From assembly GCF_006345805.1 (NCBI RefSeq), contig NC_042997.1, positions 134,106,001-134,170,000 on the forward strand: DNA of 64,000 nucleotides, read 5' to 3'. The position numbers were made by a program, and so were the translations under genes. Each line of letters begins with the position of its first letter. The stretch's first letter is position 1. The stretch is from Octopus sinensis (Eukaryota). Below are positions 11,234 to 64,000 of the stretch, in pieces. The notes under the pieces were generated by a model. It was not told the DNA's origin. It searched no databases and saw only the letters and a list, made by a program, of their open reading frames with translations.

Positions 11234-11268
<35 letters not shown>

Positions 11269-11478: not shown

Positions 11479-11552
<74 letters not shown>

Positions 11553-11567
11553 TATATATATAAATAA

Positions 11568-11618
<51 letters not shown>

Positions 11619-12313: not shown

Positions 12314-12334
12314 TATATATATATATATCTTAAA

Positions 12335-13527: not shown

Positions 13528-13586
13528 TGTGCCCACATATTTATATGTATATACGTATACATGTAAGTATGTACGTATACATACAT

Positions 13587-13682
<96 letters not shown>

Positions 13683-16779: not shown

Positions 16780-17298
16780 TTAGTTCCCATTGTCGTCTCT
16801 ATTGACATCAACCTTCCGTGCACACACACAGGCTGTGGATACATAAATTATATCTGGTTTATACACATACAATCCATCAATACATTCACCTGTTCGTTTC
16901 AGGACAGTCATTTTAGTGTGTACAGGCGTACATTCTTGATTGGTGTACTTAGGGCCGACACAGGTTTCACAGCGACATCTCGCTTCCCTACGTGATGGAG
17001 GGAAAACTGTTGAATCATGCGTAATGTCCAGGTACCAAGGACAGGTTGAACGTTCGCGGATTTCACCAAAAGATTCAAGCGATACTGGGCACTTTTTATC
17101 ACCATCGGTCAGTGTTGTCCGGTTTTCGGCTGGAGCCATTTCAGCTGGCAGAAAAAAATTATTGTCAATGGCTGCTTTGGACAAGCTCTTGTAGCGGACT
17201 TTTAAGTCTGATGGTATTTTACATTGGGTTGGAATTGATGCCGAAGATACAATCAAGATGAAGTTCAAGATGAGAAAGATTACAACTTGTGAGAGATC
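16780..17298 (-). CDS. IL17: Interleukin-17-like cytokine, exon 2 (172 codons + stop)
   Basis: Acceptor ttgttttattacag|GAT. Signal peptide (M)DLSQVVIFLILNFILIVSSA, then IL-17 cystine-knot motifs RSTCPWY, EARCRCETC, VLKRTGECIDGLYVY and VSTACVC; 10 Cys. Confidence 0.93.
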   Translation of the reverse strand, partial: DLSQVVIFLILNFILIVSSASIPTQCKIPSDLKVRYKSLSKAAIDNNFFLPAEMAPAENRTTLTDGDKKCPVSLESFGEIRERSTCPWYLDITHDSTVFPPSRREARCRCETCVGPKYTNQECTPVHTKMTVLKRTGECIDGLYVYKPDIIYVSTACVCARKVDVNRDDNGN

Positions 17299-17394
17299 CT
17301 GTAATAAAACAAGATATATTTTCATTAGGCTTTCTACGTTAATATATATATATACACACGTATATGTATATCTATAAATAGACAGATAGGTAGT

Positions 17395-17460
<66 letters not shown>

Positions 17461-18179
17461 TAGCTACCTCTTTTCTGTGTCTGGTTTGCACGATACATTA
17501 TGTGAAGTCGTGTGTTGCATCACTGCGTGTGTTAATGTTATTGGGATAAAAACTCGCCTAAGTCACAACACTATACATGGAGTGAGAGAGAGAGAGAGAG
17601 AGAGGGAGAGAGGGAGAGAGAGAGAAAGAAAGAGAAAGAGAGAGAAGGAGAGGGCGAAAGAGACTGAGTGAGGAAGTGAGAGAAAGTGGAAAGATAGAAG
17701 ATGCGATGAAGTCCATGCAATGAAGTCCATTCAGTTCCAGGTCAGACCAGTGTTTGCGTGTCATTGGGATGCCAGCTAGGACTTGAACAATCACGACTGG
17801 ACCAGCTTCGAAAGTGGGGTCTAAAAATCTTTAGACCACAGAAGCATCACTGACATTACATCCCATAGCATATGTATCATAGCATATGCATCATAAACCT
17901 AATTCATTACATAGACATAGACAACTAGGTGATACAAAAAGGGGCAACAAAACACCCAGATAGACGATACAAAAAAAAAACAAGGACTGGTCATTCGAAG
18001 CTTTCTATCCTCAGTCAAGAACTAAATCATCCTCGCAATTTTGGTATGAGTGTGTGTGTGTGTGTGTGTGTGTGCATTCATAGATACATAGTTTTTCATT
18101 ATTGTAGAATCGGACGCTTTACTTCAGAAAGAGTGGCATGAAGAAATTCGCTAGTAAACATAAACTGAAGTCTACTTAC

Positions 18180-18182
18180 CAT
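18180..18182 (-). CDS. IL17: IL-17 exon 1 coding part (ATG only)
   Basis: aaaataacgATG|gtaagtag. A phase-0 join to GAT gives MDLSQ...; ATG|gtaagtag is conserved at 50775 and 60971. Confidence 0.8.
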
Positions 18183-22128: not shown

Positions 22129-22359
22129 TACACATACACACACACACACACATATATATATAAAATACAAAAAAGGCAACAAAATATCCAGACAGACGAT
22201 ACAAGGAAAACAAGGACGCATCATTCGGAGTTTTCTATCCTCAGTCGAGTTTCAGATTATCTTTGCAATTTAGGCTGGTTATACTGGAGATTGCTCCAGT
22301 CTGACCAGCCTCAAGGAAAAAATAAGCTTAGAGCATTATATTCGCAGGAAGAAAGCAGC

Positions 22360-22400
<41 letters not shown>

Positions 22401-23298
22401 AAGGGGTGTTGAAAAATTCTTGGCTTTAAGGTTATCGCGAAATTCGGACGTTTTCAAGTTTGCAACCAAACTTTGTTTCCCGGCCCAAACTTCCGAGCTG
22501 CCTTCCTTACACGATTTAGAACAACCAAAGGGCTGATGTAATAGGTGTGTAAATCATAATTAACTGATCTTCCAGTACTTTTTTTAATCCAAAGCGAGGA
22601 TATGTATACATGCATGCTTATAATATAATATAAGATAACATAAAAAAAAACCCCAAAAAAGCCAACGATTTGTTTCGACTTATTTGATGTATAAACAATT
22701 CATATCCATGTATACAAATCGCTTCAGGGTTTTGGTTCAAAAGACAGACGAAATTCCATGTAAAAGTACTGCTAGATTTAAGATAAGGATTCAAAATACT
22801 TATGTTTAAGAGCGTGAACGTTAACTTTTCAAATACATAACAAGTACCATAAAATAAAATTATAACGGACAAAATAATTAAGTAAAGAAAATCTACAACT
22901 GTCAAAATGTTTCTTTAATATCACTTCAAATGCATTTAAGTCGAAAACATTCACTGGCTATTTTAATGATATATAATAATAACAATAGATAAATAAATGA
23001 AGTATCAGAGTCTTACTTCGTTTAAGAGAAGGTAAGAAATCGTGTAAATTCAATATTTATTCATATATTACTTCGACACCTGATTCGTGGAACACAGTGT
23101 ACCTTTTCAGACAACGTCGATTTCATGGAGAGCGTGAGCTAACGTGCGACACGAACGCGCGCGCACACGCACACAGAGACACGCACGCACACACACATTC
23201 ATTATTGTTGAATCAAGCATTTTATTCTGTCAGTTTACTTCACAAAAAAAAAACAACTCAAATAGTTAAGGAGTAATATGCAGAATTACACCAAATAA

Positions 23299-23678
23299 TC
23301 TCTCTCTATATAAAACTGAAGTTGTCTGTTTAGTAGCCTTCAACTAACACTATCTCCTCAGAGACCCTGCGGCGCAAGTTGACCAAAGTTGAGAGTATGA
23401 TAGAAGAAGGCTTGCTCTTCCTTCCGGAGCAGAAAAAATTCAAATCGGACCAGGTTAATACCAAAAATTATTTACATAAAAAAGGTGTTTTTTTCTATGA
23501 AAATGCCTATTTTTTACGATTTTTTGACAGCTGTGTCGCCATTTTTCGGTGTATTTCAACCAGAAAAATGTTGACTTAAAGAAAATAACAAGCTACATAA
23601 TGCAAAAGTTTTACTTTTCAAAAATTCCAATTCTAAAGGGTCGAAACAAACCCAAGCAACGCCGGGCGATACTGCTAG
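23299..23678 (+). mobile_element. Non-autonomous Helitron
   Basis: 5' TC (tctctctctatataaaac), 3' hairpin cccaagcaacgccggg then ctgCTAG; inserted between A and T. Confidence 0.8.
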
Positions 23679-23679
23679 T

Positions 23680-24130
23680 ATGAACTAAGGTCATCGTTAT
23701 TTTTACTTATTGTTTGTTCTGTTTGAAATAGAAAGCAAGATGAGAGCTGTACGGTTGTAAGTCAGTAATGCACTAAAGAAACAAGAAACTTTACTCGTTT
23801 CTTATTATGATGTGCATGTAAATAATGTCGATAGTCTTTAAGTTGCTCATTATATTTTCGAGTTGCAATCAAATTACATTTCTTTACTTCAATAGTTTCT
23901 AATATTTTACCTTCTCTCTACTAGTTGATGACACTAGTTTTGTGGTTTCCGCACAATGATATTCATAAAATAAGGAGAAAATATTTGATTTAAAATTAAC
24001 TTGCAGTATTCTAAACTACACGGAAGAGTTTATATCCGGTAACTGCTGATCCAGCCTGTGTGTAAGAGTTCTTAATTACTTGCAAAGTTTCACAGCTACT
24101 ATAATCCACTTCAGTGTTATTGTAGTTATC
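23680..24130 (-). pseudogene. IL-17 paralog remnant: promoter/exon 1 with deleted splice donor; no exon 2 found
   Basis: Homologous to 18170-18620. ATG at 23694-23692 is followed by accttagttc instead of gtaagtagac; TATA and Inr are degenerate. Confidence 0.75.
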
Positions 24131-24255
24131 AGAGCAACTTAAAAATTAGAATAAATAAAACTATAAAGTTGCTTGTTTATACGTTTATACGTTCTACTAG
24201 TATCATGAAATCTATACATCACTATTTGATTAATTTAACCAGTAAGACGTAATAT

Positions 24256-24669
24256 AAATAAATGCGCCCTTTTTTAAAGCCTAGCCAGGCTGATGTGGAG
24301 GCGCGTGGCTTAGTGGTTAGGGTATCAGCATCATGATCGTAAGATTGTGGTTTCGATTCCTGGACCGGGCGACGCGTTGTGTGCTTGAGCAAAACACTTC
24401 ATTTCACGTTGCTCCAGTCCACTCAGCAGGCAAAAATGAGTAACGCTGCGATGGACTGGTTTCCCGGTTGCTATGACGTATGTGTTCCCCAGCAGGACGG
24501 GGCGCCAGTCCATCGCAACGTTACTCATTTTTGCCAGCTGAGTGGACTGGAGCAACGTGAAATGAAGTGTTTTGTTCAAGCACACAACGCGTCGCTCGGT
24601 CCAGGTATCGAAACCACAATCTTACGATCATGATGCTGACACCCTAACCACTAAGCCACGCGCCCCTAC
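24256..24669 (-). mobile_element. tRNA-SINE containing an inverted copy of its own 5' half
   Basis: ~163-nt arms (24297-24460, 24505-24665) with about 6 mismatches; 12-bp TSD aagacgtaatat at 24244-24255 and 24670-24681. Confidence 0.8.
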
Positions 24670-24932
24670 AAGACGTAATATGTCTCGATGTAACTGTATA
24701 AAATTAAATAAAACCCAAATAGTTGTAACATACAATTGTTCTCTACTTGGGTTTATAACTATTTGATATATTTAGAAAACATTTTCATAATTCCTGATGT
24801 GCATACACAAAAGCTAGAATCTAAGTAGTAACTTAAACGATTCTTAGCACGTCCATGTTGATTCGAACGTGAATATTTTATTGCTGTTAATTTTTGTTAT
24901 CGGAGAATATATTTGTATTTGGAATCTCACTG

Positions 24933-26335: not shown

Positions 26336-27184
26336 ATTGTCTCCTTTATTAGTTTGGGCTTCAGAGCTGCGATCATGCTAGGTCACTGCCATTAGCTTTG
26401 CTAAATTTTCACAACTTGAAACCTTCTTTGATATGTGGAATTTGGTGAATAAGGGAGTTTGATGGTGGTGAATTTGTTACGTTTCTTGCTGCCTGGCAAG
26501 TTCGTCCAGAACTCTTGACAGGAGATCCAGTTGACTTATGAAGACACCTATATCCACTCCCATGTCGGTCTCTCGGGCATTTTGGAAGGATACTGAGGAG
26601 CTGTGGGCCCTTGAAAGACAAGTTACTGTAGTGTCTGGTTCTGTTTCCTGACGGCGATGATGAGAGTTTGGCACGATACAGTGATTCCCCGTTCTGTTGT
26701 TTGTGTAACTTTCACTGCCAAAGTATGGTACAGTCATTCTAACATTTTCGAAATGTATGTCATTGAATACCTTTCCCGCCTACGTTCTTGTGAGTAAAGC
26801 CTTAACTTTTTTAATCTCTCCTAGTTCTTAACACATCGCATTTCGACTATCTTCTTTGTGTAGTTTCGCTGGATCACTTCTAGTTCCGCCGTTAATATTA
26901 CACTGTGTAGTGGCCATAGTTGAGAGAGTAGTCTACACAGCCGAGGACAAATATCTCCAACAAATTTCAGATAAACCACATATTTCTGCAAATAAATCTT
27001 TACTCGAAGGGGCTATGATGCCAAAAGAATGACTGTAATATGAAACATCATTACACTTCTATTCCTGATGGTGCTATTAAGTTAGTCATAGCGACGGCCA
27101 ATCCTGGCTGGAACTTATCTAAGTATCCGAGTGTATGTGTGTCACATATATGTATGTATATTCATAAATGGATTTTTCTGATAA

Positions 27185-27366
27185 TTCTAACTGGGTCCCA
27201 CCTGCAAGGACATGCGCTGTTTATCTTGATATGAGATCATCATGTCGTGCACTTATGGTTGTGATGCATGGGCTTGGTGTACCCTTATCAGGCCGGTAGT
27301 CATAATGGGTATATTGGGCTTCGTATATTTTACCCCAGTGTCACTTTGATGGCATGCACTGCTTTC
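27185..27366 (+). mobile_element. Non-coding retroposon ending in (AAT)n
   Basis: Same 3' end (..gtgtcactttgatggcatg.actgct.tctcactc + (aat)n) at 36020-36445 and 36520-36665. Confidence 0.65.
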
Positions 27367-27372
27367 TCACTC

Positions 27373-27439
<67 letters not shown>

Positions 27440-29708: not shown

Positions 29709-32236
<2,528 letters not shown>

Positions 32237-33990: not shown

Positions 33991-34745
33991 AGAGGGAGAG
34001 AGAGAGAGAGGGTGAGAGAGAATATTGCGAACAATGAATGAAATAAACATGAAATGAAAAAAAGTTATATAAATAAAAAGCTCTTGTACGGAATGTTTAA
34101 ATTTGAGAACTTAGTAAATATTTCATTCATTAATTTATCGTAGTTGTTTGCTAATAGTGAATTAAAACTTGAAATGAAGACGTCAAAATAGAGAGTGAAG
34201 CTTTTTGCCGTTGCTATGTCAATACTGGAAGTTGACATTGAGAAACCTTTTTAAAGAAGTGAATCATATATGTGAAGCAATATTATTTATTTTTAATAAC
34301 AAAATCAAATGAAGAGCCTAACATGTGTCCGAGGTCAAATTATTCATACATCACAAGTACGGAAGCAATTGGCGAAGCCGTTTTGCGTGAAAAGCGAATA
34401 CGCACACATCTCTATTTATATATTAGGCAACCCCTGGCTTACTATCCATGCAGGAAGTGCAAAAGCTTGTCTCAGTTGGTACGTCACACGTACTGAGAAG
34501 AGCATTGTCGCTGTAAATTTCATTTCCTTTTCTCCTTTTTATTTTCTTTGCTCACATTTTAATTTTGTACGTTTTACTTTTTCTCTCTATCTTTTTTACT
34601 CTTTTTCTCTATCACTTGACTTTGTAAATGAACAATCTGGTGTGTTTATTTTAATGGCCTAACAATGTATACAGTGAATTTCTCTGCCATAGGTATCTGG
34701 AAGACACTCGGCAAGAAATAGAAGCATTATTGAAGGATGATGATG

Positions 34746-34805
<60 letters not shown>

Positions 34806-34810
34806 GTAAT

Positions 34811-35651
34811 GGTAAATACTGGACTAAACTAAACGCAAAAGAAATAGACAAAGAAAAATCCCAGCAATGGTTGAGAAGCTCAGGACTCAAAGCAGAAACA
34901 GAGGGATTTTTAATTGCAGCACAAGACCAAAGCCTCCCCACCAGAAATTACCAAAAACATGTAATGAAAAGAAATATTACAAGTAACTGCAGAATATGTG
35001 GAGATGGACAAGAAACAATAAATCATATTATCTCTAGCTGCCCAGTCCTGGCTAAGAAGGAATATATTCACAGACATGACAGAGTTGGAACCTACATACA
35101 TTGGAAGCTATGCCAACATTATGGAATAACAACAGAAAAAAGATGGTATAGGCACACACCAGAAAAGGTCACAGAAAACGAGAAAGCAACCATACTCTGG
35201 GATATGCCGATACACACAGATAGAGAAATTAAGGCCAACAGACCAGATATAGTTGTCAGAGATCATGAAGAAAAAAAATGCTTTCTAATTGATGCATCAA
35301 TACCGGCTGATGACAACGTGTCTCTAAAAGAAATGGAGAAACTCTCAAAATACAAAGACCTGAAAATAGAGGTAACTAGAATGTGGAATCTGAAAACAGA
35401 AACAATTCCTATCATAGTAGGTGCATTAGGCATGATAAAAAAATATTCAGACAAATACATAACAAAAACACCAGGACTTACAAACACATATAACATACAG
35501 AAAATTGCACTACTAGGCACTGCACACATCCTACGCAGAGCACCTTCCATACAATAACCATCAGAGCATCACAACAAATCACAGCACATACCCAAGGCAC
35601 ACAGAGCTGCGCTCGGTAGTGAACTGAAAGCACGCTATAAAAATAAAACTA

Positions 35652-36019: not shown

Positions 36020-36460
36020 TAAATAGATTCTGATCTTAACTGATTGGAAGTGTTATCATGTACATTGTCTTGTCATTAACCTTAACCAGTTGAGCATGTC
36101 CCTCAGTGACTGACAATATGTGCATATCTGATCACGAGCAGAAGTAGTGGGGAAGCATCATAGCCATGGGTTTAGAGGAATTCTTTAGGGTTTTAATAAT
36201 TCATCTCTGGAAACAACCCTTGTTCAGGGACCTTTTGAGCTGGATGGGCTACTCAAACTGAAGAAAATTCAAATTGGGTCCCACCTGTAAGATCATGATA
36301 TGAGATCACCATGTCGCGCACATATGGTTGAAATGCATGTGCCTGATGTACCCTTATCAGACGAGTAGTCATTATGGGCATACTGGGCTTCGTATATTTT
36401 ATCCCAGTGTCACTTTGATGGCATGAACTGCTCTCTCACTCAATAGTAATAATAATAATG

Positions 36461-36523
<63 letters not shown>

Positions 36524-36664
36524 GAGATCACCATGTCGTGCACATATGGTTGTGATGCATGTGCCTGGTGTACCCTTATCAGACGGGTAGTCATGATGGG
36601 TATATTGGGCTTCGTATATTTTACCCCGGTGTCACTCTGATGGCATGAACTGCTCTCTCACTCA

Positions 36665-36665
<1 letters not shown>
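36020..36665 (+). mobile_element. Two copies of the (AAT)n-tailed retroposon (second 5'-truncated)
   Basis: See 27185-27366; each copy ends in (AAT)n. Confidence 0.65.
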
Positions 36666-36719
<54 letters not shown>

Positions 36720-37607: not shown

Positions 37608-39107
37608 CTGGAATGTATACCAGCAGTATGAAAACCGGTGCTTTAGACACACATCAGAAACTGCTTCGAAGCATCTCTACTCTGAGATATGGCAATCTAC
37701 AAAGAGAACGAGGGTAATACACCAGAAAAGAAAGTGCTTCCTAAAGGAAGTATCAATCTCAACAGATGATGATGTATTGCTCAAAGAAATTGCGAAATTA
37801 TTCATATCCTTAAATCCTTAAAAATGTTTCAGCCCGAAAGCTGCGGCCATGCTGGGGCACCACCGTTGAATGAGCTACACTAGTATGTGAAACCATATAC
37901 AAAGATTGGGAAATAGTAAAAAAAAACCAAATAACCTGAATGCTGTTTTTGAAAATAGAAACAACTCTTACCATAGCTGGTACCTTGGAAATGATCAAAA
38001 GTAGGCAGAAAACTGCTGAACTAAACTTTCAGGACTTATACATATGCGCAACATGCAGAAAGTAGCACTAAATATATTGCATGATATGTTGCCTAGAGTA
38101 TTTTCAATACAAGAAGCAGAACAAAACATTATTCATATCTATGGCATAAAGGGATTCACTGGGTAGTGCAATGACAGTGAGTAATAAAGAATAAAATACA
38201 TTATTGTTATATAACTGGTGTTAGTTTGTATAAATATCCGCTATCTTTTACAAACTTGGAAGATATCCCTATGCCTCCCTATAAACATGCAGTGTTTCAT
38301 TTACTGAGTACAAATGTGTTAATTATAGCATGCTAAATTATACAATATTGTACAATAAGCTACTTGTATATATTTAACATATACTTAAGCATTCTGAGAA
38401 ATAGGAAATCCTTGTGAAAAGAGCAACAAATAAGCGGTGTAATGTTTGTCGGTCACAAATGCTCCCACTAGCCCATTTACTTATAGTGATATTTTTGTAT
38501 CGGCCTAATTTTCAATTAAACAAGGAAATATACGTCAGCTTTGAGCATGATTATCATGACTAATATAAATTTTGGAATGCTTATGATCAGTCAATCATAT
38601 ATGTTTACATTAAAAAAAATCGCGTTATTATACATTATAATCTCATAAAATTAATTTTCTCGTATATTTTCATTGGTTTCATTCACTATGTGGCATACCT
38701 ATTTCTTTATTATCCACAAGGGGCTAAACATAGAGGGGACAAACAAGGACAGACATAGGTATTAAGTCGATTACATCGACCCCAGTGCGTAACTGCTACT
38801 TAATTTATCGACCCCGAAAGGATGAAAGGCAAAGTCGACCTCGGCGGAATTTGAACTCAAAACGTAACAGCAGACGAAATACGGCTACGCATTTCGCCCG
38901 GCGTGCTAACGTTTCTGCCAGCTCGCCGCCTTTCGTAAGCTGGAATTTATACCAGCAGTATGAAAACCGGTGCTTTAGACACACACCAGAAACTGCTTCG
39001 AAGCATCTCTACTCTGAGACATGGCAATCTACACAAAGAGAACGAGGGTAATACACCGGAAAAGAAAGTGCTTCCTAAAGGAAGTATCAATCTCAACAGA
39101 TGATGAT
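37608..39107 (+). repeat. Direct duplication of a 166/168-nt degenerate R4/Dong RLE fragment (37608-37773, 38940-39107)
   Basis: Only a few differences by eye; peptide-like ..RHTPET..DMAIY..KCFLKEVSISTDD. Confidence 0.8.
38697..38930 (-). mobile_element. tRNA-SINE family A monomer
   Basis: Full head and AATAAA-containing tail. Confidence 0.85.
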
Positions 39108-49735: not shown

Positions 49736-50579
49736 CACGCAGAGCAGCGAGAATCCAAATAAAAGGATATTCTCCGATAAAGAAAATTAAGAGGGATTAA
49801 GAATGTACAAAGAATGGCCAGATACGTCATTGTTTAGATCCTAGCTTTTTTGCATGCTTCCCATGAAAAAGGAAAAATGTTTGGAAATTTTGATATGAAA
49901 TATTTGTATTCTCAAGTATAGAAGAATTCCTTGTTATACCTATTTGTTATGACTGAATGTTACTCACAATTTTGTACATTTACGTTGAGGGATATCCCTT
50001 CTTATTGTTTATATAATTGTAAATTAATTAGTGTTGTAAATTTCGAGATTACGGTACAAGTTATATTAACTCATATACCTGCGACATTATAAGCTTCTTT
50101 AATTCTAATGGTGTAGTTGTACTGCATCACTTGGAGAGACTACTCTGATACACAGAAATTCTATCGAGTAATTATATAACAGTAAAACTTACTATATAAA
50201 ATGATATTTGAATCATTATCGCTGTTTATTGCAATCCAAAAGAAAAGAAAATAAATTTTGCTATTACAAATGTGAACGCTTAAAGTGAATTTGTCTTTGC
50301 ACAACAGTGTCCGGACGAAAATGTATAATTCTATGTTAAAATTAGAGAAAGCAGGTAAGAAAGCATATATTGCAGCTTAGATGAATGTATATCGATAAGA
50401 TCTACAATAACACTCACTGGACAGGGTCATGGTAGTAGTGAAATTCTATAAATCCTTAAAAAGTATTACACAAAGTCCGGATTCACTATACAACCGGATG
50501 AAAGCTCCGTATAGTTTGGAGTTCCACAAGTTAATATTTTTAAATCATATATTTTTCATTGTTTTATGAAGAACAATAA

Positions 50580-50779
50580 ATGGAAATCCCATTAGTGGGT
50601 TCCCCAGCTGTATATAAAGCGCAAAATTCAAGACAGTCGATGTCATTTAGAAGCACATCATATTAACAAAGGAATAAGATATCTTGCTGCCTTAGTGCTT
50701 TACTTACTTACGGTCGTACTGCTCTCATCTTGCTTTCTGTTTCGAAGAGAACAAATACTACAGTTAAAATAATAATGGT
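50580..50779 (+). promoter_or_regulatory. IL-17 paralog promoter and ATG-only exon 1 (TATA 50611, Inr ~50645, ATG 50775-50777, donor 50778)
   Basis: Inverted homolog of 18170-18380; intact TATATAAA, TCATTT and ATG|gtaagt; kB-like ggaaatccc (50582) and gggttcccc (50597). Confidence 0.85.
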
Positions 50780-50979
50780 AAGTAGACTTTAGTTTATCTT
50801 ATTGAGCGCGTTTCTGCATGTCACACCTTAAATATTTGAGTTTTCTATATGATGTAAAAAGCTTCAGAATTTGTCTACAATAATCAAAATCAATCAATCA
50901 ATCAATCTATCTATCTAATCTATCTACATGAGTATGTATATATCTACTTACCTACCCATGGTACTCTGTGTGTGTGTAT

Positions 50980-51073
<94 letters not shown>

Positions 51074-51251
51074 TAATAAATAATGAGGGAGATAAATTGA
51101 ATATTAATTTAATTATTGTCAATTTAAAACCAGTAGCCTAGCGTATAAAAGATCTGAAAAATCAGAAAAAATTCAATACATGTTTATATTTAGGCTAAAA
51201 CGTGAAACTCAGAGTAACAGTTTTGTTGAATTCTCTGCTGCTTTAAATAAA

Positions 51252-51317
<66 letters not shown>

Positions 51318-51544
51318 CTCGCATAGAAGAAATGAAAAAAAAAATAATATGCTGAAAATTTTATCAGAGATGTTGAATGTAGTGTGATTGGTGGCAAGAT
51401 AGATAACTTATTTGATGTTGATTTTCTAAAACCGCTAAGATGTATATTATAACATAATTGCAGCATTGTGTTTCTGATGTGTAAAAGAATTATGCATTAA
51501 TACAGGATATATATATATATAAAAAACCATTTTATCGACACAGG

Positions 51545-51870
51545 TAAGATTGTGTAGTGAAGAGGTTCGCTTTACAACCATGTTGCTTTGCGGTTCAATC
51601 CCACTACACAACATCTTAAGCAAGTGTCTCCTTCTGTATCCTCACAATAACTTGTGAGTGAATTTGGTAGAAGGAAACTGTGTACAACCGTAAGTTATAT
51701 ACGTGTGTATGCGTGTGTGTGTGTGCGCGCACACTTACCTTTGTGCCTGAGTTTTAACACACCTGGCTTTAACAAGTAAGTACTAGTATCGATATGTTCC
51801 ATCAAACTCATCACAGCGATGTCCCAGCATGGCCACAGTCTAATCATTGGAACAAGTAAAAGATGAAAGA
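51545..51870 (+). mobile_element. Old SINE family B in the paralog intron, shared with 63270-63590
   Basis: Same position and flanks in both paralog introns. Confidence 0.7.
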
Positions 51871-52195
51871 TTTTCTTCAGTAAATTTCAACAATTCATTG
51901 TAACATATCTTCTTGGTTCAAATGTTTCCTTATACTATAAAAATTCTTATCTGCATATAAAAGTTGTTTACTTATAATTTCACACATTTACTTGTATATT
52001 GGCACTCCTCTATTTAATGTATTTGCCCTTTGGCTCTTATTGTCTTTCGGCTTGCAACAACAGCTATTTGAAGTAGTTTCAAGTGAGGCAATCTATTGTG
52101 TATGTTTGTTACTTTTATTATTTGTCTTCGTTACCATTCAAAAATGAAAGTAAAGTAAAATCATGTGTCTAGTATCTACATATATACATACATGC

Positions 52196-52232
<37 letters not shown>

Positions 52233-52326
52233 AAGATACATACATACATACATACATACATGCATACGTACAACTACACACACACACGCACACATACATG
52301 CATAAATACATGCATGCATACATACA

Positions 52327-52362
<36 letters not shown>

Positions 52363-52996
52363 TATACATACACACACACATACTTAGAGAGAGAGAGAGA
52401 GAGGTAGACAGAGAGAGGCCAACCATTGTTTCTTTCAGCATTAGACGAGGGTCGCTGTTCACTTCCTGTCTATGTATATGGATTAGGTTTATGATGCATA
52501 TTATAGGTGCTATGAGATATAATGTCAGTGGTGTTTCTGAGGTTTAAAGATTCTTAGGGGTTTTCGACATCGGATTCCCTCTCCCATCTGATCTATTCGT
52601 GGTCAATCAAGTCCAAACTGGCATCTCAATAGCATTCAAACACTGATCTGCCCTCATGAGCCAAAAGCCACATGTTGATCTTCATTGCAACTTCTATCTC
52701 TCCAGCATTCCACTCTCTCTTTTCCTCTCTCTCTTTCTCTCTCTCTGTCTATATGTAGTGCTGTGACTAGGGAGAATTTTTATGCGAATATTATTAACAC
52801 ACACACTATTGCAACACACGCGTTCATATAATGGATCTCACAAACCAAATACAAAAAAGAAGTAACTCCCTCTATTCCTGTATGTATGCATGCATGTATG
52901 TATGTATGTATGTATGTATGTATGTATGTATGTATGTATGTATGTATGTATGTATGCATGTATGTATGTATGTATGTATGTATGTATGTATGTATG

Positions 52997-53068
<72 letters not shown>

Positions 53069-53139
53069 ACTCTGTCTGTCTATCTACATACATACATTCA
53101 TATATAATATATATTATATAATATATATATATATATATA

Positions 53140-53277
53140 TATGTGGCGTAGGAGTGACTGTGTGGGAAGTAGCTTGCTTACCACCACATGGTCCCGGGTT
53201 CAGTCTTCTACTATAGCCCGGGCCGACCAAAGCCTGTGAGTGGATTTGGTAGACGAAACTCAAAGAAGCCCTTCGTA

Positions 53278-53371
<94 letters not shown>

Positions 53372-53541
53372 TTGTGTGTCTGCGTTTGTCCTTCCAACAT
53401 CGCTTGACAATCGATGCTGGTGTATTTACGTCCCCGTAACTTAGCGGTTCGGCAAAGAGACCGATAGAATAAGTACTAGGCTTCCAAAAAATAAGTCCTG
53501 GGGTCGATTTGCTCGACTAAAGGCGTAGCTCCAGCATGGCC
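53140..53541 (+). mobile_element. SINE family B running into the gap
   Basis: Head ggcgtaggagtgactgtgtgg; tail cut at cagcatggcc by the Ns. Confidence 0.8.
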
Positions 53542-53641
53542 NNNNNNNNNNNNNNNNNNNNNNNNNNNNNNNNNNNNNNNNNNNNNNNNNNNNNNNNNNN
53601 NNNNNNNNNNNNNNNNNNNNNNNNNNNNNNNNNNNNNNNNN
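53542..53641. other. Assembly gap (100 N, probably of unknown size)
   Basis: Direct reading. Confidence 0.99.
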
Positions 53642-53656
53642 TATGTGTATATATAT

Positions 53657-53861
53657 CAAACTTGCTGGAATGAAAACAAATGTAGATTATTCATTAATAC
53701 GTTAAAAGGAAAGGCTCCATTTTGCAGCACTCCGACTTTGTCGTTTCTAACCATTAGATTGTGAAACTCGCTCACTTTCTTTTGCGTATTCACAGTCGAA
53801 AGTTTTTAATTATTGCTGGATATCCTTCATAGATACATACATATAAATACATGTGTTGAAA

Positions 53862-53931
<70 letters not shown>

Positions 53932-53958
53932 TATATAATATATATATATTATATATTA

Positions 53959-53994
<36 letters not shown>

Positions 53995-54207
53995 TATAAT
54001 ATATATATGTATATATATATAATATTTATATATAGTTATATATATATATATTATATATAAAATATATCTATATATATATATATATATAATATATTTAGAT
54101 ATAATTATATATATATATATATATAAAATATATATATATATATATAATATATATATATATATATAATTATAAATATATATTTATACATTTGTATATATAT
54201 ATATATA

Positions 54208-54247
<40 letters not shown>

Positions 54248-54372
54248 TCATATATTTATACACACATATATAGATACATAAACGTAGAAATGTATATATA
54301 TATTATATATATATATATATATATACCATATATATATATATTATATATATATACATATATACATATATACGT

Positions 54373-54406
<34 letters not shown>

Positions 54407-55270
54407 ATATATATAATAATATAATATATATATATCTACATGCGTATATCCTAAATAAATTTAGATTAAAGAAATATTTACACGCATGTATAACAATATA
54501 GAATATTTATATCCTTATACATTTTCAATATGCAATATACAACGAATTTCATAGTTTGTACATAATTTCATATGTTTTTATAATAATATCTTTGTAAATG
54601 AGAATTTTGTATATTTTTATAAGAATTTATTTCTCAATAATATTATGTTTAATATAATTTAATATAATCCTATTCTATATATTTCATAAATAAAGGGAGC
54701 AAGGAGCGACCAGTTTATATCGTGTATAAATTATAATTGTAATATAAAATTGCATTCAACGAATAAAATATAATGTAATCTTAAATGTTCCACCTTTTTA
54801 TTTGTTTCTTATGTATTATACTCTTGCCTAAAGTAAATCATATATTCTTTGGATACAGTTGTGGACAGCTGGATGTCCCATTCAAATCTTTTATCCGTGT
54901 TTTTTTTCTGCGGCTTTTTTTATACCACTTTTGTTTTGTTAGTGTACTCGCTTATTAGTTGGAGGTAAAGGAATTTTTGAACAGTGCCTGTGCTGTATAT
55001 ACATATATTATGTCGAGATGAAGTCTCAGCCGCCTTATTTATAGTGAGTGTATATACATAAAAGTATGAGCAACGAGAGACATATCACTTCGTGTGTTTC
55101 TTTCTCTCTGAATCCACTGCTTTAAAATTATTTAATGGAAGAGTATGCGTACATCTGTGGAAATACCTATTTCGCGATTCAATATCAAGTACGATGAACT
55201 CTTTGGTGCCACCTGATCATCCACAGACGAAAATAACTATTTTGCTCTTTCGAAATTGTGTAAAGAAATA
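53657..55270 (+). repeat. Inverted paralog of the IL-17 3' flank (16150-15030)
   Basis: For example ggaatgaaa.caaatgtaga..attcatt.atac; cagctggatgtc.cat.caaatctttta; gcggctttttt.atacca; ggaagagtatgcg. Confidence 0.85.
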
Positions 55271-55500
55271 TTGGGTTGTCAGGAAAGTTTGTGCCGATTT
55301 ATAGTAGCTTACATTTCGACTTATTTTAGAACATGGTTGAGTTCATAAAATAGGATTTGACTACACCTCCATTTAGAGCACAGTTTAAAATATCTTTTCG
55401 TGGAAGAAGGTTTATGTTGCTATAACCTGTGTTAATTCTGTAACTCTTTAAAATGGAAGATAAGAAAGTTAATTTTCGGCACTTGATGCTTTGGGAACCA
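55271..55500 (+). mobile_element. mariner 5' TIR and start of transposase
   Basis: ta|ttgggttgtcaggaaagtttgtgccgattt; ATG at 55453 gives MEDKKVNFRHLMLWE. Confidence 0.7.
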
Positions 55501-55689
55501 GACAAATTGCTGCAGCTCGGCTGTGATGCTTCACTTATTGGACTGCGAGCATACAGAGGCATCACCTTGAAGAGTTATAGTTGAACAAAGCCACATCATC
55601 ACTTATGGTTAGCTTTATCTACTTAAGCCTGTTAAGTATTCTATCGGTATCTTTTATGCAGTCACTAATCTGCCGTGACGTAAGTAATG

Positions 55690-58600
55690 CATACATACAT
55701 ACACACCAACAAACCAGCCCAACCAAACAACACCACCACCAGCGCCACCACGAACAACACCATCATCACCACCACCACCAACAACCCAAAAGGTAGAAGA
55801 GAAAACCAAAAAGACTTATACCCCACCCCCAAAATCCCATACACCACATCTCAACTGATACAAACCAGCACCAACACCACCAACAACAAAATCATCATAC
55901 TCAGAAATAGCCCCCAATACCCTACCCTTCTCATCTTCTGATTCTTCCGACATGTCTTCAGATGAAGACGACACAGAAGATTGGCAAGCGGCCACAGGGA
56001 GAAGGAGAAAAAGGGGGTAAAAAAGAATAGAGAAGCAGACAAACAAAGCAGGGTGGTTTACCACTCCCGAAACCAAAACACCCGCAGAAAACAAAAGCGT
56101 CAAAAACACACTAACACCAAACCCCACAACAATGTTGGCAGCTATAAACATCAACGATCCAGACCTAATGGAATACATTAGGTCAAACACCAAAATAACG
56201 GAAAATGATACCAAAACAAAGAATCACCCACGCACAACACATTAAAATCGTACACATAACACAAAACACACACAGTACACTAAAATCTCTCTACCCGGAT
56301 GCAGTAGGGAGATTTCAAAAATACCTGTCTAAAAAACTATACAAAAACCTTCTGGGAAAAAAATCTTAATGCTCAAAATAGGTAGTATAAATGTACGTGG
56401 CTTGGGTCGCCTTGGTAACAAGGCCACCTGTTAAATGACATCAAGTCACAGAATCTGCATATCACAGCCATCAGCGAGACCAGACTCCACAACTCGAGGG
56501 CTCTCCAGCACATGTTCGGTGAACATTTTGTTTTTTTTTCTCCATGTTTGCCGAGAATGGGTGGAGGTAGCACCGCGGTGCTTCTTCGGAAGAGTCTCGA
56601 CCTCAAAATAAGAGCAATTTTCCTAAACCCGGAGGATAGGCTGGTCGTCTTGGATGGCGATGGCAGTAATGGGTGTGATTTTCGACTGATAACAGTTTAT
56701 GCACCGTCGTTTACAGGTCGGCCAGATTTCTTTCGACGTCTAGAAGTTTTCCTCGGAACATCTCGACCTTTACTTTTAGTGGGGGATTGGAATGCTACCC
56801 TGGATACGCATCTAGACTACATGAGCAGAGTTAGTAATAGGAGGGGATGTAAATGCCTCAAAGACCTGCTCAGAGGTTTCAAACTGTCTAACAAGTACCG
56901 ACTGGACCACCCGTATGTGCTAATGTGGTCATAGAGTAACCGCATCGGGTCGTCTAGGCTTACAGGGACCGGATTAGTGCTATCGTCAACAATAGATGGT
57001 GGTATGCCCTAAAGAAAGCAATTAAAACAGAATCGGTTAGGTATAGTAAGGCCCTAGCATTAAACCGAAATAGAATAGAGAGAGACTTAGTGAAGAAATT
57101 AGGAGAGGCACTTAGAACTAGCATCACATCCAACGTACTGGCAGTGAAGTTGGCCCTCGACCAACATTTCAACGCCAAACACGAAGGATGCGTACTCTGA
57201 GGAACGAAGGAGTTGGAGTCGCCCGAGAGGCCCGAGTGGCGGAGGCGCAACGAAGCAACAAAGTCACCATTAGATCTCTGACAGATGAACAGGGGTGCGA
57301 ATTACTCGAACCTGAAAGGATGTGTGACGCCTTTCAACAACACTTTGCCCGACTATTCGGGACAACTGGTGGGTCAGAACGCAGAGTGGACTTTAGTGCC
57401 TGTCTGCATAGTCTGCCACGACTCTCGGCAAGAGAAGCGGAGTGTTATGAAAGACCCATCACAGTCGCGGATGTACGGGATGCGATGGCAGGCTGCACGG
57501 GAGACAAGTCGCCAGGCTTGGATGGTCTGCCCTACGAACTTTATTGTCATATGCCTGACTTGTTTGGAGGCGTCTTGGCAGCTCTGTACTGCAACTAGCA
57601 GCAAAACGGGAGTATCCTCGTCTCTGTAAAGCGAGGAGCGGTGGCACTGCTAAAGAAAGATCCAAACAAGGGGAACGTCATAGATAACTTCAGGCCCATC
57701 ATTCTGCTCAATGCAGATTTGAAGATTTTGGCCAAGGTGTTAGCCGAGAGGTTGCGCTTGTCATCGACAAACTGATCGACAAGGCGCAAACGTGCGCTGT
57801 GACGGGTATGAGTATCCATGACAACCTCCTTAAGGAACCAGGAATGGGTGGGACGCTGATCAATTTGGATCAATCAAAAACTTTCGATAGGGTAGACCAT
57901 CACTACTTGGAGGCTGTCCTTAGAGCGGCTGGTTTCGATCCCGTCTTCCGCGGTTGGATCGCTGCCTTATGTAGCGGCATCTGCTCGGTAGTTCGCGTAA
58001 ACAGTCATCTATCCAGACCATTTAACATCACGCGTTCGATACGTCAAGGATGCCCACTCTCGTCACTTCCGTACGTATTGACTATTGAGCCACTACTGCG
58101 GAAGCTGGCGACGCTGAGGGGCATCCCGCGAGAGCTGGGATGCTGGGGTAGCGTGTCCGCATACGCGGACGACGTTCCCGTCATAGTGTCGAGCCACAAG
58201 TATATCGAGCTGGTCGGCGAAACATTTAAGAATACGAAGCATTCTGGAGCAAAATTTAACCGGGAAAAGTCAGTGGGCTCACGGCTCGGCACCTGGAGAA
58301 GCAAACTCATGCCGTCAAACAGCATCTCCATCGTGGTGGGACGCTGGACCGATGGACCGGTTAAATTGCTCGGAGTCTGGTTCGGTCTGGACCTCCAAAT
58401 GGAGAAGAACTAGGGCGAGATAATGACTAGGGTGGCCACTCTCATCCAGCAATGGGCCGAGCGGAAGCTATTCCTAAAAGGTCGGGCGGAGGTGGCGAAC
58501 GCTTACATCGCATCCGTCATCGATTACCGTCTGACCGTCGTGCCTTGTCCCGACCCTACCTTCACCAAATTGGAACGTATACTCTTCCGCTTTTTGTGGA

Positions 58601-59793
58601 TGGGAATCGTTCCGATGGTTAGGCGATCAATTTGCTGTCAACACCCACTAAAAGGAGGGAGAGGCATACCATGATTGGTGATGTGCAGACATGCGCTGAG
58701 TCTGCGACATCTCCGGCGATTGATAGACGACGGTGAATAGGTGTGGCCGCCGTTTGTGCAACGCGCTTTCCCGCACATCGTGTCTGTCCGAACTCTGGAT
58801 CAAACAGAGACAGAGGCTAGGCGAATGGCACCACGAGTGCCGCCTTGTTTCAAGCAACTCTGCCGTCCGAGACCAAACTTGTGCGACTTCAATTCCACAA
58901 AGTCATTCTGTCGAGGATTAGTAGAGGGGAGGGGCGACGACGTTCTCGGGCAGAATCTGGGCGTTGACGAGGAACACCTGACCCGCCTGTTCAGGACAAC
59001 TTTCGGGCTGGGACCTATGGACAATCACCAGAGATCCCTGACCTGGCAGTGCTATCGAGAAGCATTACCTGTTCGGGATAAGCTCTACAGGCATGGTTCG
59101 AGACACACCGGACTGACTTGCCCGAGATGCGGTCAGAGCGATGAAACCGTTCCGCACGCACTCGTGCAGTGTCCAACCGTTTCGAACCTGTGGGCTTATG
59201 CCGAACAGGTGCTGTAACGTGTGGGACGAGTTCGCTAGTCGGCCGAGTCTATCGTGAAAATTGCTCCGACATCTCCCCGTAACCGTGAAGGCAAGGCAGT
59301 CTTCATCGTACAGGTGGCCATGGTGAAAGAATGTGTGAAGTGGACTCGAGCGAAAGGTTTAGAGACAAACACTTTCCTCTCTGGCCAATTGCTCATCAAC
59401 GTTTTCAAGTACCACTTGAAAAGGAAGGTGAGAATAGAGAAACAAGTTTTGTCTCGCGAAAGTTTCAATAAAAGGTGGGTGAATGTAGCAAAGATGATAC
59501 GTGCAAATGACGAAACTACATTGAGCATGATCTGTAAACCGAAAAAAAAGAGAAAGAAAGCACTTTGCAGTCATGTGTTTATTCCCTTCCTGCCTGAGGT
59601 TACCGTGGTCTTTTTCGTAGGCTTTTCTTTCCAAGGATAAACCTAATACACGAGCCCTTTTGATCGCTTTTTTTTCCTCAAGATCCTTTTTGATCGGAAT
59701 TATATTTTTCTCCTCATATCTATTTTCGAAAAGAAAAGCTCCACATTGTATTTTGTCCCTCTGTGTTCGGCTCTGTGTGGCTAATAAAGAAAC
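55690..59793 (+). mobile_element. L1/Tx1-clade LINE (end of ORF1 + disrupted ORF2 from 56369: APE-RT-CCHC)
   Basis: MLKIGSINVRG, AISETRL, LLVGDWNATLD, KSPGLDGLPYE, NFRPIILLNADLKI, RQGCPLS, SAYADDV, CPRCGQSDETVPHALVQC; ends aataaagaaac + (TATC)n. Confidence 0.92.
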
Positions 59794-59895
<102 letters not shown>

Positions 59896-60393
59896 GCGTA
59901 TCTTGCGAGGGTGCCATGACGACGGCGGTTGTGTGGGACACAATGGTGGAATGCTCGAGGGACAAATCGACGGGTTTGGATGGTCTGCTCTGCGAGCTTT
60001 ACAGTTGTATGCCAGACTTGCTTGGAGACGTCTTGGCAGCTCTGTACTGCCACAGGCAGCAAAACGGGAGCATCTCCGGTTTTGTGAGCCGAGGAGCTGC
60101 AACGCTGCTGACGAAAGATCCAAACAAGGGGGACGTCATAGACAACTTTAGGCCTATCATTCTGCTCAATGCAGATTTGAAAATTTTGGCCAAGGTGTTA
60201 GCCAAGAGGTTGGCGCTTGTCATCGAGAAACTGGTCGACAAGGCGCAAACGTGCGCCGTGCCGGGCCGGAGCTTCCATGACAACCTCCATCAGGGTGGTT
60301 AAGGAACCTGGCATGGGTAGGACGTTGATCATTTTCGATCAATCCAAAGCTTTCTATAGGGTACATCATCGATACTTGGAGGCTGTCCTCAAA
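59896..60393 (+). mobile_element. Second Tx1 RT fragment (related subfamily)
   Basis: Parallels ~57440-57920; begins immediately after (TATC)n 59795-59895. Confidence 0.88.
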
Positions 60394-60778
60394 TCATTAT
60401 CGTTGTTTATTCCAATGCAATAGAAAGTAAATTCTCCTATTATAGATGTGTACAGTAATGATACAATTAGAATCGACGTACGCTTAAAGTGGATTACTCT
60501 CTGCACAACAGTCACTGGACAAAAATTTATAATACTATGTTAAAATAAGACAAAGTAGGCGAAACAGCGTATATCGCAGTTTAGATGACTCTGTATCATT
60601 GAGATCTACAATAACACTTACTGGACTGGGTCATTATAGTAACGAAATTCTATAAATAATTTAAAAATTACACACAAAGTCCGCATTCACTAGGAAACAG
60701 GATGTATCCTCTTCCTTAGAGTTTGGAGTTCCACCAGTTAATATTTTTACATCAAATATTAACTGAACTACATTATAT

Positions 60779-60975
60779 GGAAATCCCATTTGTGGTTTTT
60801 ACAACTGTATATATTCAGCATATTCAAGACAGTCGATGTCATTTCAAAGCAAATCATTTTAAGAAACGAGTAAAATTTGTTACTGTCTCAGTGATTTTCT
60901 GACTTACAGCCGTACTGCTCTCATCTTGCTTTCTATTTCGAAGAGAACAAACATTACAGTAAACAAAACGATGGT
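60779..60975 (+). promoter_or_regulatory. Fourth IL-17 paralog promoter and ATG-only exon 1 (TATA-like 60808, Inr ~60841, ATG 60971-60973)
   Basis: Homologous to 50580-50779 (homology from ~60420); aaaacgATG|gtaagtagac; kB-like ggaaatccc at 60779-60787. Confidence 0.85.
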
Positions 60976-61110
60976 AAGTAGACTTTAATTTATATTTTCT
61001 AGTGAATTTCTACATGTTGCTCCTTACTATTTGAGTTTTCTGTCTCATGTAAAACATTAGAATTTGTCTACAATAATTTAAACCTGTATATATACATATA
61101 TGTATGTATG

Positions 61111-61157
<47 letters not shown>

Positions 61158-61217
61158 ATAGTAAATTAGAGATAAAACCACTATTAGGCAAATCAAACAG
61201 TGAAATCATAAGCCAAT

Positions 61218-61298
<81 letters not shown>

Positions 61299-61300
61299 GT

Positions 61301-61367
<67 letters not shown>

Positions 61368-61501
61368 AGTATATATATATATATAATCATACTAGGGAAT
61401 AAATTAGGGCGGGTTATTCATTGACTGAGTTGTGGAATGCTGGTTCGTCTCTAAATTAGTTACACACACACACACACACACACTTATATATATATATGTA
61501 T

Positions 61502-61810
61502 ATAAATACAATGTACATTTAAACACATAAGAGATATCCGTCATAGGATTCCTTTCACGCTAGAAGGAACAGCTAAAGTCCAAGCCATTATTAGGGATAA
61601 AAACTCGAAGGGAATGAAAAATAAAAACATTTACCATCTATCTCCCGGACCATGGTTTCTGACATTTTTAGCAAATAAGATAATTTGCTAGGCTAAGTCT
61701 TCATCAACAGATACGCCTAGATTAAACATATAGGACTTTAGCTGTTCCTTCTAGCGTGAAAGGAATCCTGTGACGGATACCTCTTATGTGTTTAAATGTA
61801 CACTGTATTT
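61502..61810. mobile_element. MITE with ~79-bp TIRs in TA context
   Basis: taaatacaatgtacatttaaacacataagag...ctaaagtcc versus its reverse complement, about 3 mismatches. Confidence 0.8.
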
Positions 61811-61894
61811 ATATGAATAATATATAGTCTATTGACTAATTTTTCTACACGCTAGGCCACAGATAATAAAATTTCTAAAATCTTTATTACCCTG

Positions 61895-61944
<50 letters not shown>

Positions 61945-62138
61945 AGGGAAAGTTTACGAAAAAAACAACAAAAGACGAAGACAGGTGGTGTACAAAACAA
62001 ACAGATGTATTAGAATAACGCTCAAGAATAGAAAAAGTCTTTTACGTTTCGAGCCTACGCTCTTCTACAGAAAGGTACACAGGAGAGAAAAAAATGTGTG
62101 TAGTGGCTAAAGATGTATCATATATATATGTGTGTATA

Positions 62139-62175
<37 letters not shown>

Positions 62176-62180
<5 letters not shown>

Positions 62181-62995
62181 TCAATATAGGGTGGCAAAAA
62201 AAATTTTGTAGAATTTTTTTTTTTTTTTTTTTTTTTTTTGCCACCAGCGGCCTAGTGGGAAAAAATTAATAGTCATAGACCATTTTTAAGTTCAACATCA
62301 ACAATCAAGAAACGGCCATAATAGGCCATTCACCCACTAGAAATAACAGCCAAAGCTTCAACCGCAAATAAAGTCAATTCCGTAAACAGGAGAAAATTAA
62401 AAAACATTTACCCTGTAATTTCTTATACGATGCACCGTTTCATCTGCTGTTTAATGGTAAACTAACCTGATTAATTAAATCAAGCCAATCTTCCATAGGC
62501 CCTCAGATTCTTCAGTAAGAAATAGCCACAAGTCGGAACAGATATTTTCACGAGGCATTTCCGACCCTGCCAAGGTAATATCTGACCTAAAATTTTCAAA
62601 TCATCGCACTCGCGCCAAATTTATCGGCAGCAAATAAATATAAGCCGTCGATTCCATTACGGAATTAACCAGAAAATTCATAATTAATCAATATAGGGTG
62701 GCAAAAAAAATTTTGTAGAATTTTTTTTTTTTTGCCACCAGCGGCCTAGTGGGAAAAAATTAAATAGCTATTTCTTACTGAAGAATCTGAGGGCCTATGG
62801 AAGATTGGCTTGATTTAATTTAATCAGGTTAGTTTACCATTAAACAGCAGATGAAACGGTGCATCGTATAAGAAATTACAGGGTAAATGTTTTTTAAATT
62901 TTCTCCTGTTTACGGAATTGACTTTTATTTGCGGTTGAAGCTTTGGCTGTTATTTCTAGTGGGTGAATGGCCTATTATGGCCGTTCCTTGATTGT

Positions 62996-62999
<4 letters not shown>
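62176..62999. repeat. Direct-plus-inverted duplication A-B-X-A'-B'(rc)
   Basis: A 62176-62270 = A' 62683-62765; B 62297-62526 = reverse complement of 62767-62999, nearly identical. Confidence 0.85.
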
Positions 63000-63043
<44 letters not shown>

Positions 63044-63915
63044 ACATCACCATATAGAAGAAATAAAAACTTAATATGTTGATTTTATCAGAGATGTTGA
63101 ATGCACTGTGATATGCGGCAAAATAGATAATTATTATTTTACGTTCATCTTCTAAAACCGCTAAGATGTATATTATAACATAATTGTAGGTTGTAGCATT
63201 GTGTTCCTGATATGAGAACGAATCATAGATTAATACAAGATATAAAGTATTTTTTATCGGCACAGTTAAGGTTGTGCGATGAAGAAGCTCGCTTTACAAC
63301 CATGTAGTCTGGGGTTCAATCCCACTACACAGCATCTTAAGTAAATGTCTCCTTCTGTATCCTCACAATAACATGTGAGTGAATTTGGTAGAAGGAAACT
63401 GTGTGCAATCGTAAGTTATATACATGTGTGTGCGTGTGTGTGTGTGCGCGTGCGTACCTTTGTGCCTGAGTTTTAACAAACCTGGCTTTAACAAATAAGC
63501 ACTAGTATCGATATGTTCCATCAAACTCATCACAGCGATGTCCGAGCAGGGCCGCAATCTAATCATTGGAACAAGTAAAAGATGAAGGATATTCTCCAGT
63601 AAATTTCAGCAATTCGTTGTACCATATCTTCTTGGTTCAAATGTTGTTTCCTTATACTAAAAAAAAAAAATATTTTCCTCGTATAACAGCTGTTTACTTA
63701 TGATTTCACACATTTAGTTGTATATTGTCACTCCTCTATTTAATACACTTATCCTTTGATTCTTATTGTCTGCCGACTGACACACTTTCAACAACTGCTA
63801 TTTGAAGTATTATCAAGTGAGACCATCTTGTGTATTTTGAAAACCTAATCGGCGTGTTTGTTACTTTTATTATTTGTCTTCGTTACCATTCAAAAATGCA
63901 CCCACAAATGCATAC

Positions 63916-63975
<60 letters not shown>

Positions 63976-64000
63976 GCCAACCATTGTTTCTTTCAGTATT

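Follow-up and report, generated by a model that had tools for sequence, protein, structure and literature searches.

An assembly gap in an IL-17 cluster of Octopus sinensis probably hides the coding exon of an unannotated gene

Copy 2, a gene interrupted by Ns

The subject of this work is a 64-kb stretch of chromosome CM016859.1 of Octopus sinensis (GCA_006345805.1), called the window throughout (record coordinate = window coordinate + 134,106,000). It lies in a tandem cluster of diverged interleukin-17 (IL-17) duplicates, and an assembly gap within it appears to interrupt a two-exon IL-17-like gene that we call copy 2. The gap is the single run of Ns in the window and is exactly 100 N long (53542-53641). 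We compared the region with two loci of O. vulgaris, L004 (OX597814.1:131,751,347-131,847,327) and L005, the intervening 28 kb (131,723,005-131,751,346) being outside the comparison, and with loci L009 and L008 of CM046601.1 in O. bimaculoides. A further O. sinensis stretch of CM016859.1, L006, reaches beyond the window (L006 9094-12066 corresponds to about CM016859.1 134,171,000-134,173,972). The features on which the argument turns are the following.

50500-50644, plus strand: copy 2 promoter region, with an upstream block and TATA box common to P0001, P0002, P0003 and P0037 in alignments
50645-50777, plus strand: copy 2 exon 1, consisting of the 5′ untranslated region (UTR) and the start codon only (ATG 50775-50777, donor gtaagtagact)
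50778-53144, plus strand: assembled copy 2 intron, rich in microsatellites; 52467-52983 corresponds to the copy 1 intron and 51253-52857 to the copy 3 intron
53145-53541, plus strand: repeat resembling a short interspersed nuclear element (SINE), cut by the Ns; dispersed copies, 94% identical to the family consensus
53542-53641, no strand: 100-N assembly gap, with content predicted from O. vulgaris L004 1-2522
53642-55272, plus strand: copy 2 3′ flank, homologous to copy 1 16154-15027 and orthologous to O. vulgaris L004 from 2523
16780-18182, minus strand: copy 1, a two-exon IL-17 gene with an annotated 173-aa protein, P0001 (record 134,122,780-134,124,182)

Copy 1 is complete and provides the template for the structure of these genes. 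Its TATA box (TATATAA) is found at 18347-18341, the start codon at 18182-18180 closes exon 1 and is directly followed by the donor gtaagt, the acceptor ag is at 17300-17299 and the coding sequence of exon 2 occupies the 519 nt of 17298-16780, with a score of 53.8 bits for Pfam IL17 (PF06083, cut-off 24 bits). Copy 2 is built on the same plan up to the gap. In an alignment that also included copies 1 and 3 and three annotated O. sinensis genes (P0002, P0003 and P0037), it keeps every conserved block of the promoter and 5′ UTR. The TATA box, TATATAAA, sits at 50611-50618 on the plus strand, and transcription would start at 50645, judging by conservation. The start ATG/gtaagtagact (the slash marks the splice boundary) recurs in every annotated IL-17 gene of the cluster, in O. 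sinensis as in O. vulgaris, and in the ATG-only exon 1, donor, TATA box and 5′ UTR blocks copy 2 agrees with P0001, P0002, P0003, P0037, P0036 and P0040.

The intron and the right flank can be followed against copy 1 to either side of its exon 2. Intron segments 52467-52654 and 52713-52983 align to copy 1 17917-17739 (E 8e-22) and 17616-17344 (E 8e-41), respectively, at an identity of 70-73%, compared with 73-83% for copy 3. This homology ends at 17344, only 44 nt short of the copy 1 acceptor. It restarts beyond the gap at 53659, opposite copy 1 16154 and 626 nt past the copy 1 stop codon: 53659-53925 aligns to 16154-15875 (E 1e-50) and 54308-55272 to 15972-15027 (E 2e-162). The first-pass annotation of this DNA had described copy 1 accurately, and had reported for copy 2 an intact promoter and ATG/gt exon 1, an intron tracking that of copy 1 to about 50 nt before its acceptor, a SINE running into the Ns and homology resuming about 630 nt downstream of the copy 1 stop; all of these hold, the two distances at the measured values of 44 and 626 nt. 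Searching the window with tblastn (word size 2, E up to 100) gave no further IL-17 exon 2, the next-best match having an E value of 0.22.

Neither edge of the gap is coding. On the left there is the intronic repeat and on the right the sequence starts inside a TA/TG microsatellite of the 3′ flank, with nothing in frame or continuous across the Ns. The repeat belongs to a dispersed family: its head and its tail each have 13 matches in about 250 kb. ARAGORN found no tRNA in the gap-edge element and it is labelled SINE-like because of its dispersed copies only. It is missing its last few tens of nucleotides. Since the two edges neither overlap nor abut and the end of the SINE is absent, sequence is certainly missing here.

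The position of the gap in two other octopuses

O. sinensis and O. vulgaris separated only about 2.5 million years ago and their genomes are largely collinear (PMC10700109). O. vulgaris L004, which contains no Ns, is about 98% identical over 2523-12324 to window 53642-64000, so that L004 1-2522 faces the gap. Here we found an intact IL-17 exon 2 at L004 922-1455 (OX597814.1:131,752,268-131,752,801), 534 nt or 177 codons long, preceded by the acceptor ttttattacag/GAT and placed 1.07 kb upstream of the base corresponding to the right edge of the gap. L004 1-2522 begins with a SINE tail; after 147 nt of unique sequence come (CT)n/(TA)n/(ATT)n arrays and then the acceptor with the open reading frame. 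The frame is followed by 140 nt of 3′ sequence, a repeat insertion of ~550 nt, a 170-nt (ATT)n array and the microsatellite in which the right contig of O. sinensis starts. With the methionine of exon 1 the product would be 178 aa long; it scores 52.6 bits for Pfam IL17 and is 74% identical to copy 1 and 92.7% to copy 3. All ten of its cysteines align with those of P0002 and P0038, as read from the sequences, and the hydrophobic stretch VIFLFLNFILIVSSASIP is visible as a candidate secretion signal. The ratio of nonsynonymous to synonymous divergence (dN/dS) of the exon relative to copy 3 is 0.38, which, like the retained cysteines, is a sign of constraint. The O. vulgaris exon is thus an intact positional ortholog, with a flank about 98-99% identical to the right flank of the gap, although it comes from another species, is itself unannotated and has its upstream exon 1 outside the compared sequence.

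The left side was anchored through L005. It is colinear with window 6531-28186 at 97-98%, which makes copy 1 on the left contig, and a decayed relic that we call copy 4 (listed below), true orthologs of their O. vulgaris counterparts. Anchors shared by the two species are 30,865 nt apart in O. vulgaris and 25,456 nt apart in O. sinensis, a surplus of ~5.4 kb in O. vulgaris.

In O. bimaculoides, L009 and L008 together are colinear with the whole window: an inverted copy 1 unit, the copy 4 relic, a repeat-rich spacer, a unit at the copy 2 position, intergenic sequence (L008 5056-7817, matching window 55705-59253) and the copy 3 ortholog XP_014786843.1. The unit at the copy 2 position is found in one piece, with promoter and exon 1 at L009 36191-36989, an intron at 38093-38768 colinear with that of copy 2, an ancestral SINE that together with the sequence following it matches O. 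vulgaris L004 1-288 (86%), and an intact exon 2 at L009 39478-40023, which is exon 2 of XP_014786842.1 (P0004). This complete unit (L009 about 36.2-40.0 kb) is the positional ortholog of copy 2 by synteny; it differs in having AAG in place of the start codon, in a gene model that uses a distant upstream start and in a non-coding identity of about 79-87%. Synteny with both species indicates that the gene at this position already possessed exon 2 in the common ancestor, and that the other two lineages have kept it.

The SINE at the edge of the gap deserves separate attention. The SINE tail in O. vulgaris shares non-consensus changes with both O. bimaculoides gene intron SINEs (AAGTAC to AAGCAC, GGCTTAC to GGCCTAC and changes of the GCTCGAC to GCTTGAC type). 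The gap-edge element lacks the diagnostic substitutions that the intron SINEs share between O. vulgaris (L004 2-83) and O. bimaculoides (L008, L009). We therefore rejected, on the family alignment, its assignment as the ortholog of the L004 1-83 tail, to which it is only 83% identical. Being close to the consensus and free of the shared substitutions, it is best regarded as a separate and younger insertion rather than the ancestral intron SINE, which should then lie within the gap. Two tandem units inside the gap had been considered on account of the 83% mismatch, and this idea was dropped as not needed once the SINE was shown to be separate and younger.

Probable content of the gap and the alternatives

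An intact exon 2 at this position in both O. vulgaris and O. bimaculoides makes it most likely that the O. sinensis exon is unassembled and not lost, and we are fairly confident that copy 2 exon 2 exists in O. sinensis within the gap. The central claim of the first-pass annotation, that an unannotated IL-17 paralog is hidden here, is supported by these comparisons of genomic sequence. The hidden interval is another matter: its proposed size of ~1.2 kb is too small, as the comparison with O. vulgaris gives a minimum of about 2.5 kb and possibly some 5.5 kb. It would hold the remainder of the younger SINE, the ancestral intron SINE, microsatellites, the acceptor, the 534-nt exon 2, the 3′ UTR, the repeat insertion and the (ATT)n/(TA)n arrays. 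The repeat at L004 1542-2002, within this interval, has further copies at window 27180-27425 and 36076-36716.

How would the gene be organised then? The assembled part would comprise exon 1 (5′ UTR and ATG) and about 2.8 kb of intron, while the single coding exon of ~534 nt, encoding a signal peptide and an IL-17 cystine-knot domain, would reside in the unassembled sequence for which the 100 Ns are a placeholder. Splicing of exon 1 to exon 2 would produce the junction 5′ UTR (50645-50777)-ATG/GATCTCTCTCAAGCT, and the product is predicted to be a secreted IL-17-like cytokine. Besides two SINEs and one further repeat, the hidden stretch would contain long (ATT)n/(TA)n/(CT)n arrays, with a core around exon 2 that is 92-96% identical to copy 3. 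This density of repeats, combined with near-identity to copy 3 only 10 kb away, is the likely reason why the long-read assembly broke exactly at this point. The assembly is also demonstrably unreliable 11 kb further on, as described below for copy 3.

Several observations weigh against an intact copy 2 gene. Copy 4 is a partial dead copy in the same cluster. The AAG in place of ATG in the O. bimaculoides exon 1 (L009 about 36,860 in the alignment) means that the copy 2 lineage has not been under uniform constraint; it is also the probable reason for the unusual RefSeq model XP_014786842.1, which spans 30 kb and has an extended N-terminus. In O. vulgaris exon 1 and exon 2 were not seen on one molecule, the 28 kb between L005 and L004 being outside the comparison, and the repeat insertion 140 nt past the stop codon displaces the ancestral poly(A) region. 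A collection of 15 billion proteins contained no copy 2-type protein: the 90% cluster that such a protein would join has two members, neither of this type, and the 90% clusters of P0001, P0002, P0003 and P0008 likewise have no copy 2-type member.

The alternative that survives best is a real loss, in which O. sinensis, or the sequenced haplotype, deleted exon 2 and left an orphan promoter with an exon 1 that is either dead or serves as an alternative first exon of copy 3; as exon 1 encodes only a methionine, the copy 3 protein would be unchanged in the latter case. Copy 4 illustrates that partial dead copies persist in the cluster, heterozygous deletions are a common cause of contig breaks, and the absence of a copy 2-type protein from the databases searched would fit as well. 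We nevertheless consider a loss unlikely. The exon is intact both in the sister species, at a distance of about 2.5 million years, and in O. bimaculoides, while exon 1 and its donor are perfectly conserved in O. sinensis. A deletion that had become fixed should normally leave no gap in the assembly, whereas here the contigs end in repeats that neither overlap nor abut. Loss would therefore have to occur within about 2.5 million years and be joined by an unrelated contig break at the same spot.

A second possibility is that the gap hides a whole extra IL-17 unit, with its own exon 1 and exon 2. The O. vulgaris surplus of about 5.4 kb between the anchors is roughly the size of one repeat unit, and long N runs at the equivalent place in O. 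bimaculoides could hide more. Known hidden content of about 2.5-3 kb together with ordinary indels in repeats also accounts for the same surplus, and indels between O. sinensis and O. vulgaris elsewhere amount to 0.2-0.8 kb. A full unit in addition to the known content would need at least 7 kb, and an extra unit seems to us decidedly improbable. Finally, a mis-join of two contigs from different paralogs or loci during scaffolding, which the first-pass annotation had named as grounds for giving up the hidden gene, is very improbable. In its favour, a fixed 100-N run says nothing about length, which means that adjacency of the contigs is not shown by the assembly itself, and the SINE at the contig end has an identity of only 83% to the L004 1-83 tail. 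Against it, the 83% figure is explained by the younger separate insertion, the left contig is colinear with L005 through copies 1 and 4 and the right one with L004 into copy 3, and the flanks are in the expected order, orientation and spacing relative to copies 1 and 3 (30.9 kb vs 25.5 kb), with the same order in O. bimaculoides.

Neighbouring copies and the counting of IL-17 genes

Two further units complete the picture of the window.

60480-64000 (runs off the window), plus strand: promoter, exon 1 and intron of copy 3, ATG 60971-60973; closest paralog of copy 2
23692-23998, minus strand: decayed promoter and exon 1 relic, copy 4, with further remains of the unit at 22165-24932 and without exon 2

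In copy 4 an 8-nt deletion takes out the G of the ATG together with the splice donor, and a 65-nt insertion precedes the TATA box. The region is about 98% colinear in O. vulgaris L005 and an exon 1-like fragment matching it is found in O. bimaculoides at L009 about 16572-17810; with a counterpart at the same position in that species, the relic appears to be old. Reverse-transcriptase-like open reading frame fragments, remnants of retroelements, are present at 12335-12826, 29920-31166, 34730-35557 and 56512-60302, on the far side of copy 1 and between IL-17 units.

Copy 3 (XP_029648853.1, P0038), 10 kb downstream of copy 2, resembles it in the ATG-only exon 1 and in a SINE at the matching intron position, and has its exon 2 at a window-equivalent position of about 65.2 kb. 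The protein of this exon is 92-93% identical to that of the O. vulgaris copy 2 exon, yet copy 3 is a separate gene whose flanks are only 73-83% identical to those of copy 2. When the O. vulgaris copy 2 is compared with copy 3, identity reaches 95.7% in exon 2, 95% in an intron block ~550 nt upstream of the acceptor and 87% in the 3′ UTR. Overall, a ~1.3-kb tract around exon 2 (L004 273-1594 vs 13335-14187) is about 87-96% identical, against 73-83% in the distal intron and flanks. Synonymous divergence between the two exons is 0.086, far below the divergence of the flanks, and this pattern looks like gene conversion rather than constraint alone. Judged from these alignments, it suggests that the neighbouring copies 2 and 3 have exchanged sequence by gene conversion.

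The O. sinensis copy 3 is itself affected by a fault of the assembly. In L006 a 1.47-kb segment containing its exon 2 and 3′ flank is found twice in tandem, at 9094-10560 and 10597-12066 (window equivalents about 65,000-66,466 and 66,503-67,972), with 0 substitutions and 11 gap bases between the copies. The duplicate is absent in O. vulgaris, and given this absence and the lack of substitutions it is very likely an assembly artefact. The first of the two copies is frameshifted and XP_029648853.1 uses the second; the spurious first exon of this model (MELTEITHAFANWR) derives from the 3′ flank of the first. The warning in the first-pass annotation that IL-17 counts from this assembly may be underestimates is therefore only half of the matter: an exon hidden in the gap would lower the count, as proposed there, but the artefactual duplicate of copy 3 exon 2 allows over-counting too.

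In O. vulgaris no gene is called on the exon at L004 922-1455. The model CAI9715942.1 (P0040, 604 aa) begins at the next gene, the first annotated ATG of L004 (10001) being that of copy 3 exon 1, and according to cluster look-ups it adjoins the copy 1 ortholog CAI9715941.1. CAI9715942.1 (L004 10001-85981) is a chimeric model that joins five successive IL-17 exon 2s and uses a GT inside exon 2 (GCG/GTATGT) as a donor; six IL-17 exon 2s, including the unannotated one at L004 922-1455, are represented by this model alone. A short conserved sequence that translates to M-x-LTEIT-xx-FANWR recurs ~250 nt 3′ of every IL-17 exon 2 that we examined (window 16537-16496 on the minus strand; L002 12400; L004 14296, 30171, 43035 and 57720), and one RefSeq model takes it as a start exon. 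The O. bimaculoides assembly has long N runs at L009 2458-4729, 5036-6428 and 40891-49626 and at L008 1-4591, which fall where exon 2 at the copy 1 position should be and again after exon 2 of XP_014786842.1; a similar hidden-exon problem probably affects this assembly as well.

The expansion of IL-17 in Octopus is already established: the account in PMC8353272, citing Albertin et al. 2015, gives 31-36 genes in O. bimaculoides. Our literature search, which did not extend to the O. sinensis genome paper, found no census of IL-17 genes for O. sinensis. Copy 2 would be a further member of this known expanded family and no new kind of gene, probably present without annotation in both O. sinensis and O. 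vulgaris. A broader proposal, which the comparison of sequences allows us to put forward only tentatively, is that the two species share an intact, expressed and unannotated gene in a cluster whose coding exons are homogenised by gene conversion, and that this homogenisation breaks assemblies and gene models, so that repertoires may be mis-counted in both directions.

What is new here is the evidence of mis-counting in the IL-17 cluster, by assemblies and annotations alike, in three Octopus species. Three faults lie within some 100 kb of this one cluster: in O. sinensis one gene is probably lost in a gap and another is duplicated and given a false N-terminus, and in O. vulgaris one model fuses five genes and a sixth is unannotated. 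The understanding of IL-17 function is unchanged by these findings. IL-17 family counts and expression quantification from Octopus references need manual curation, and such repertoire counts are used in comparative immunology.

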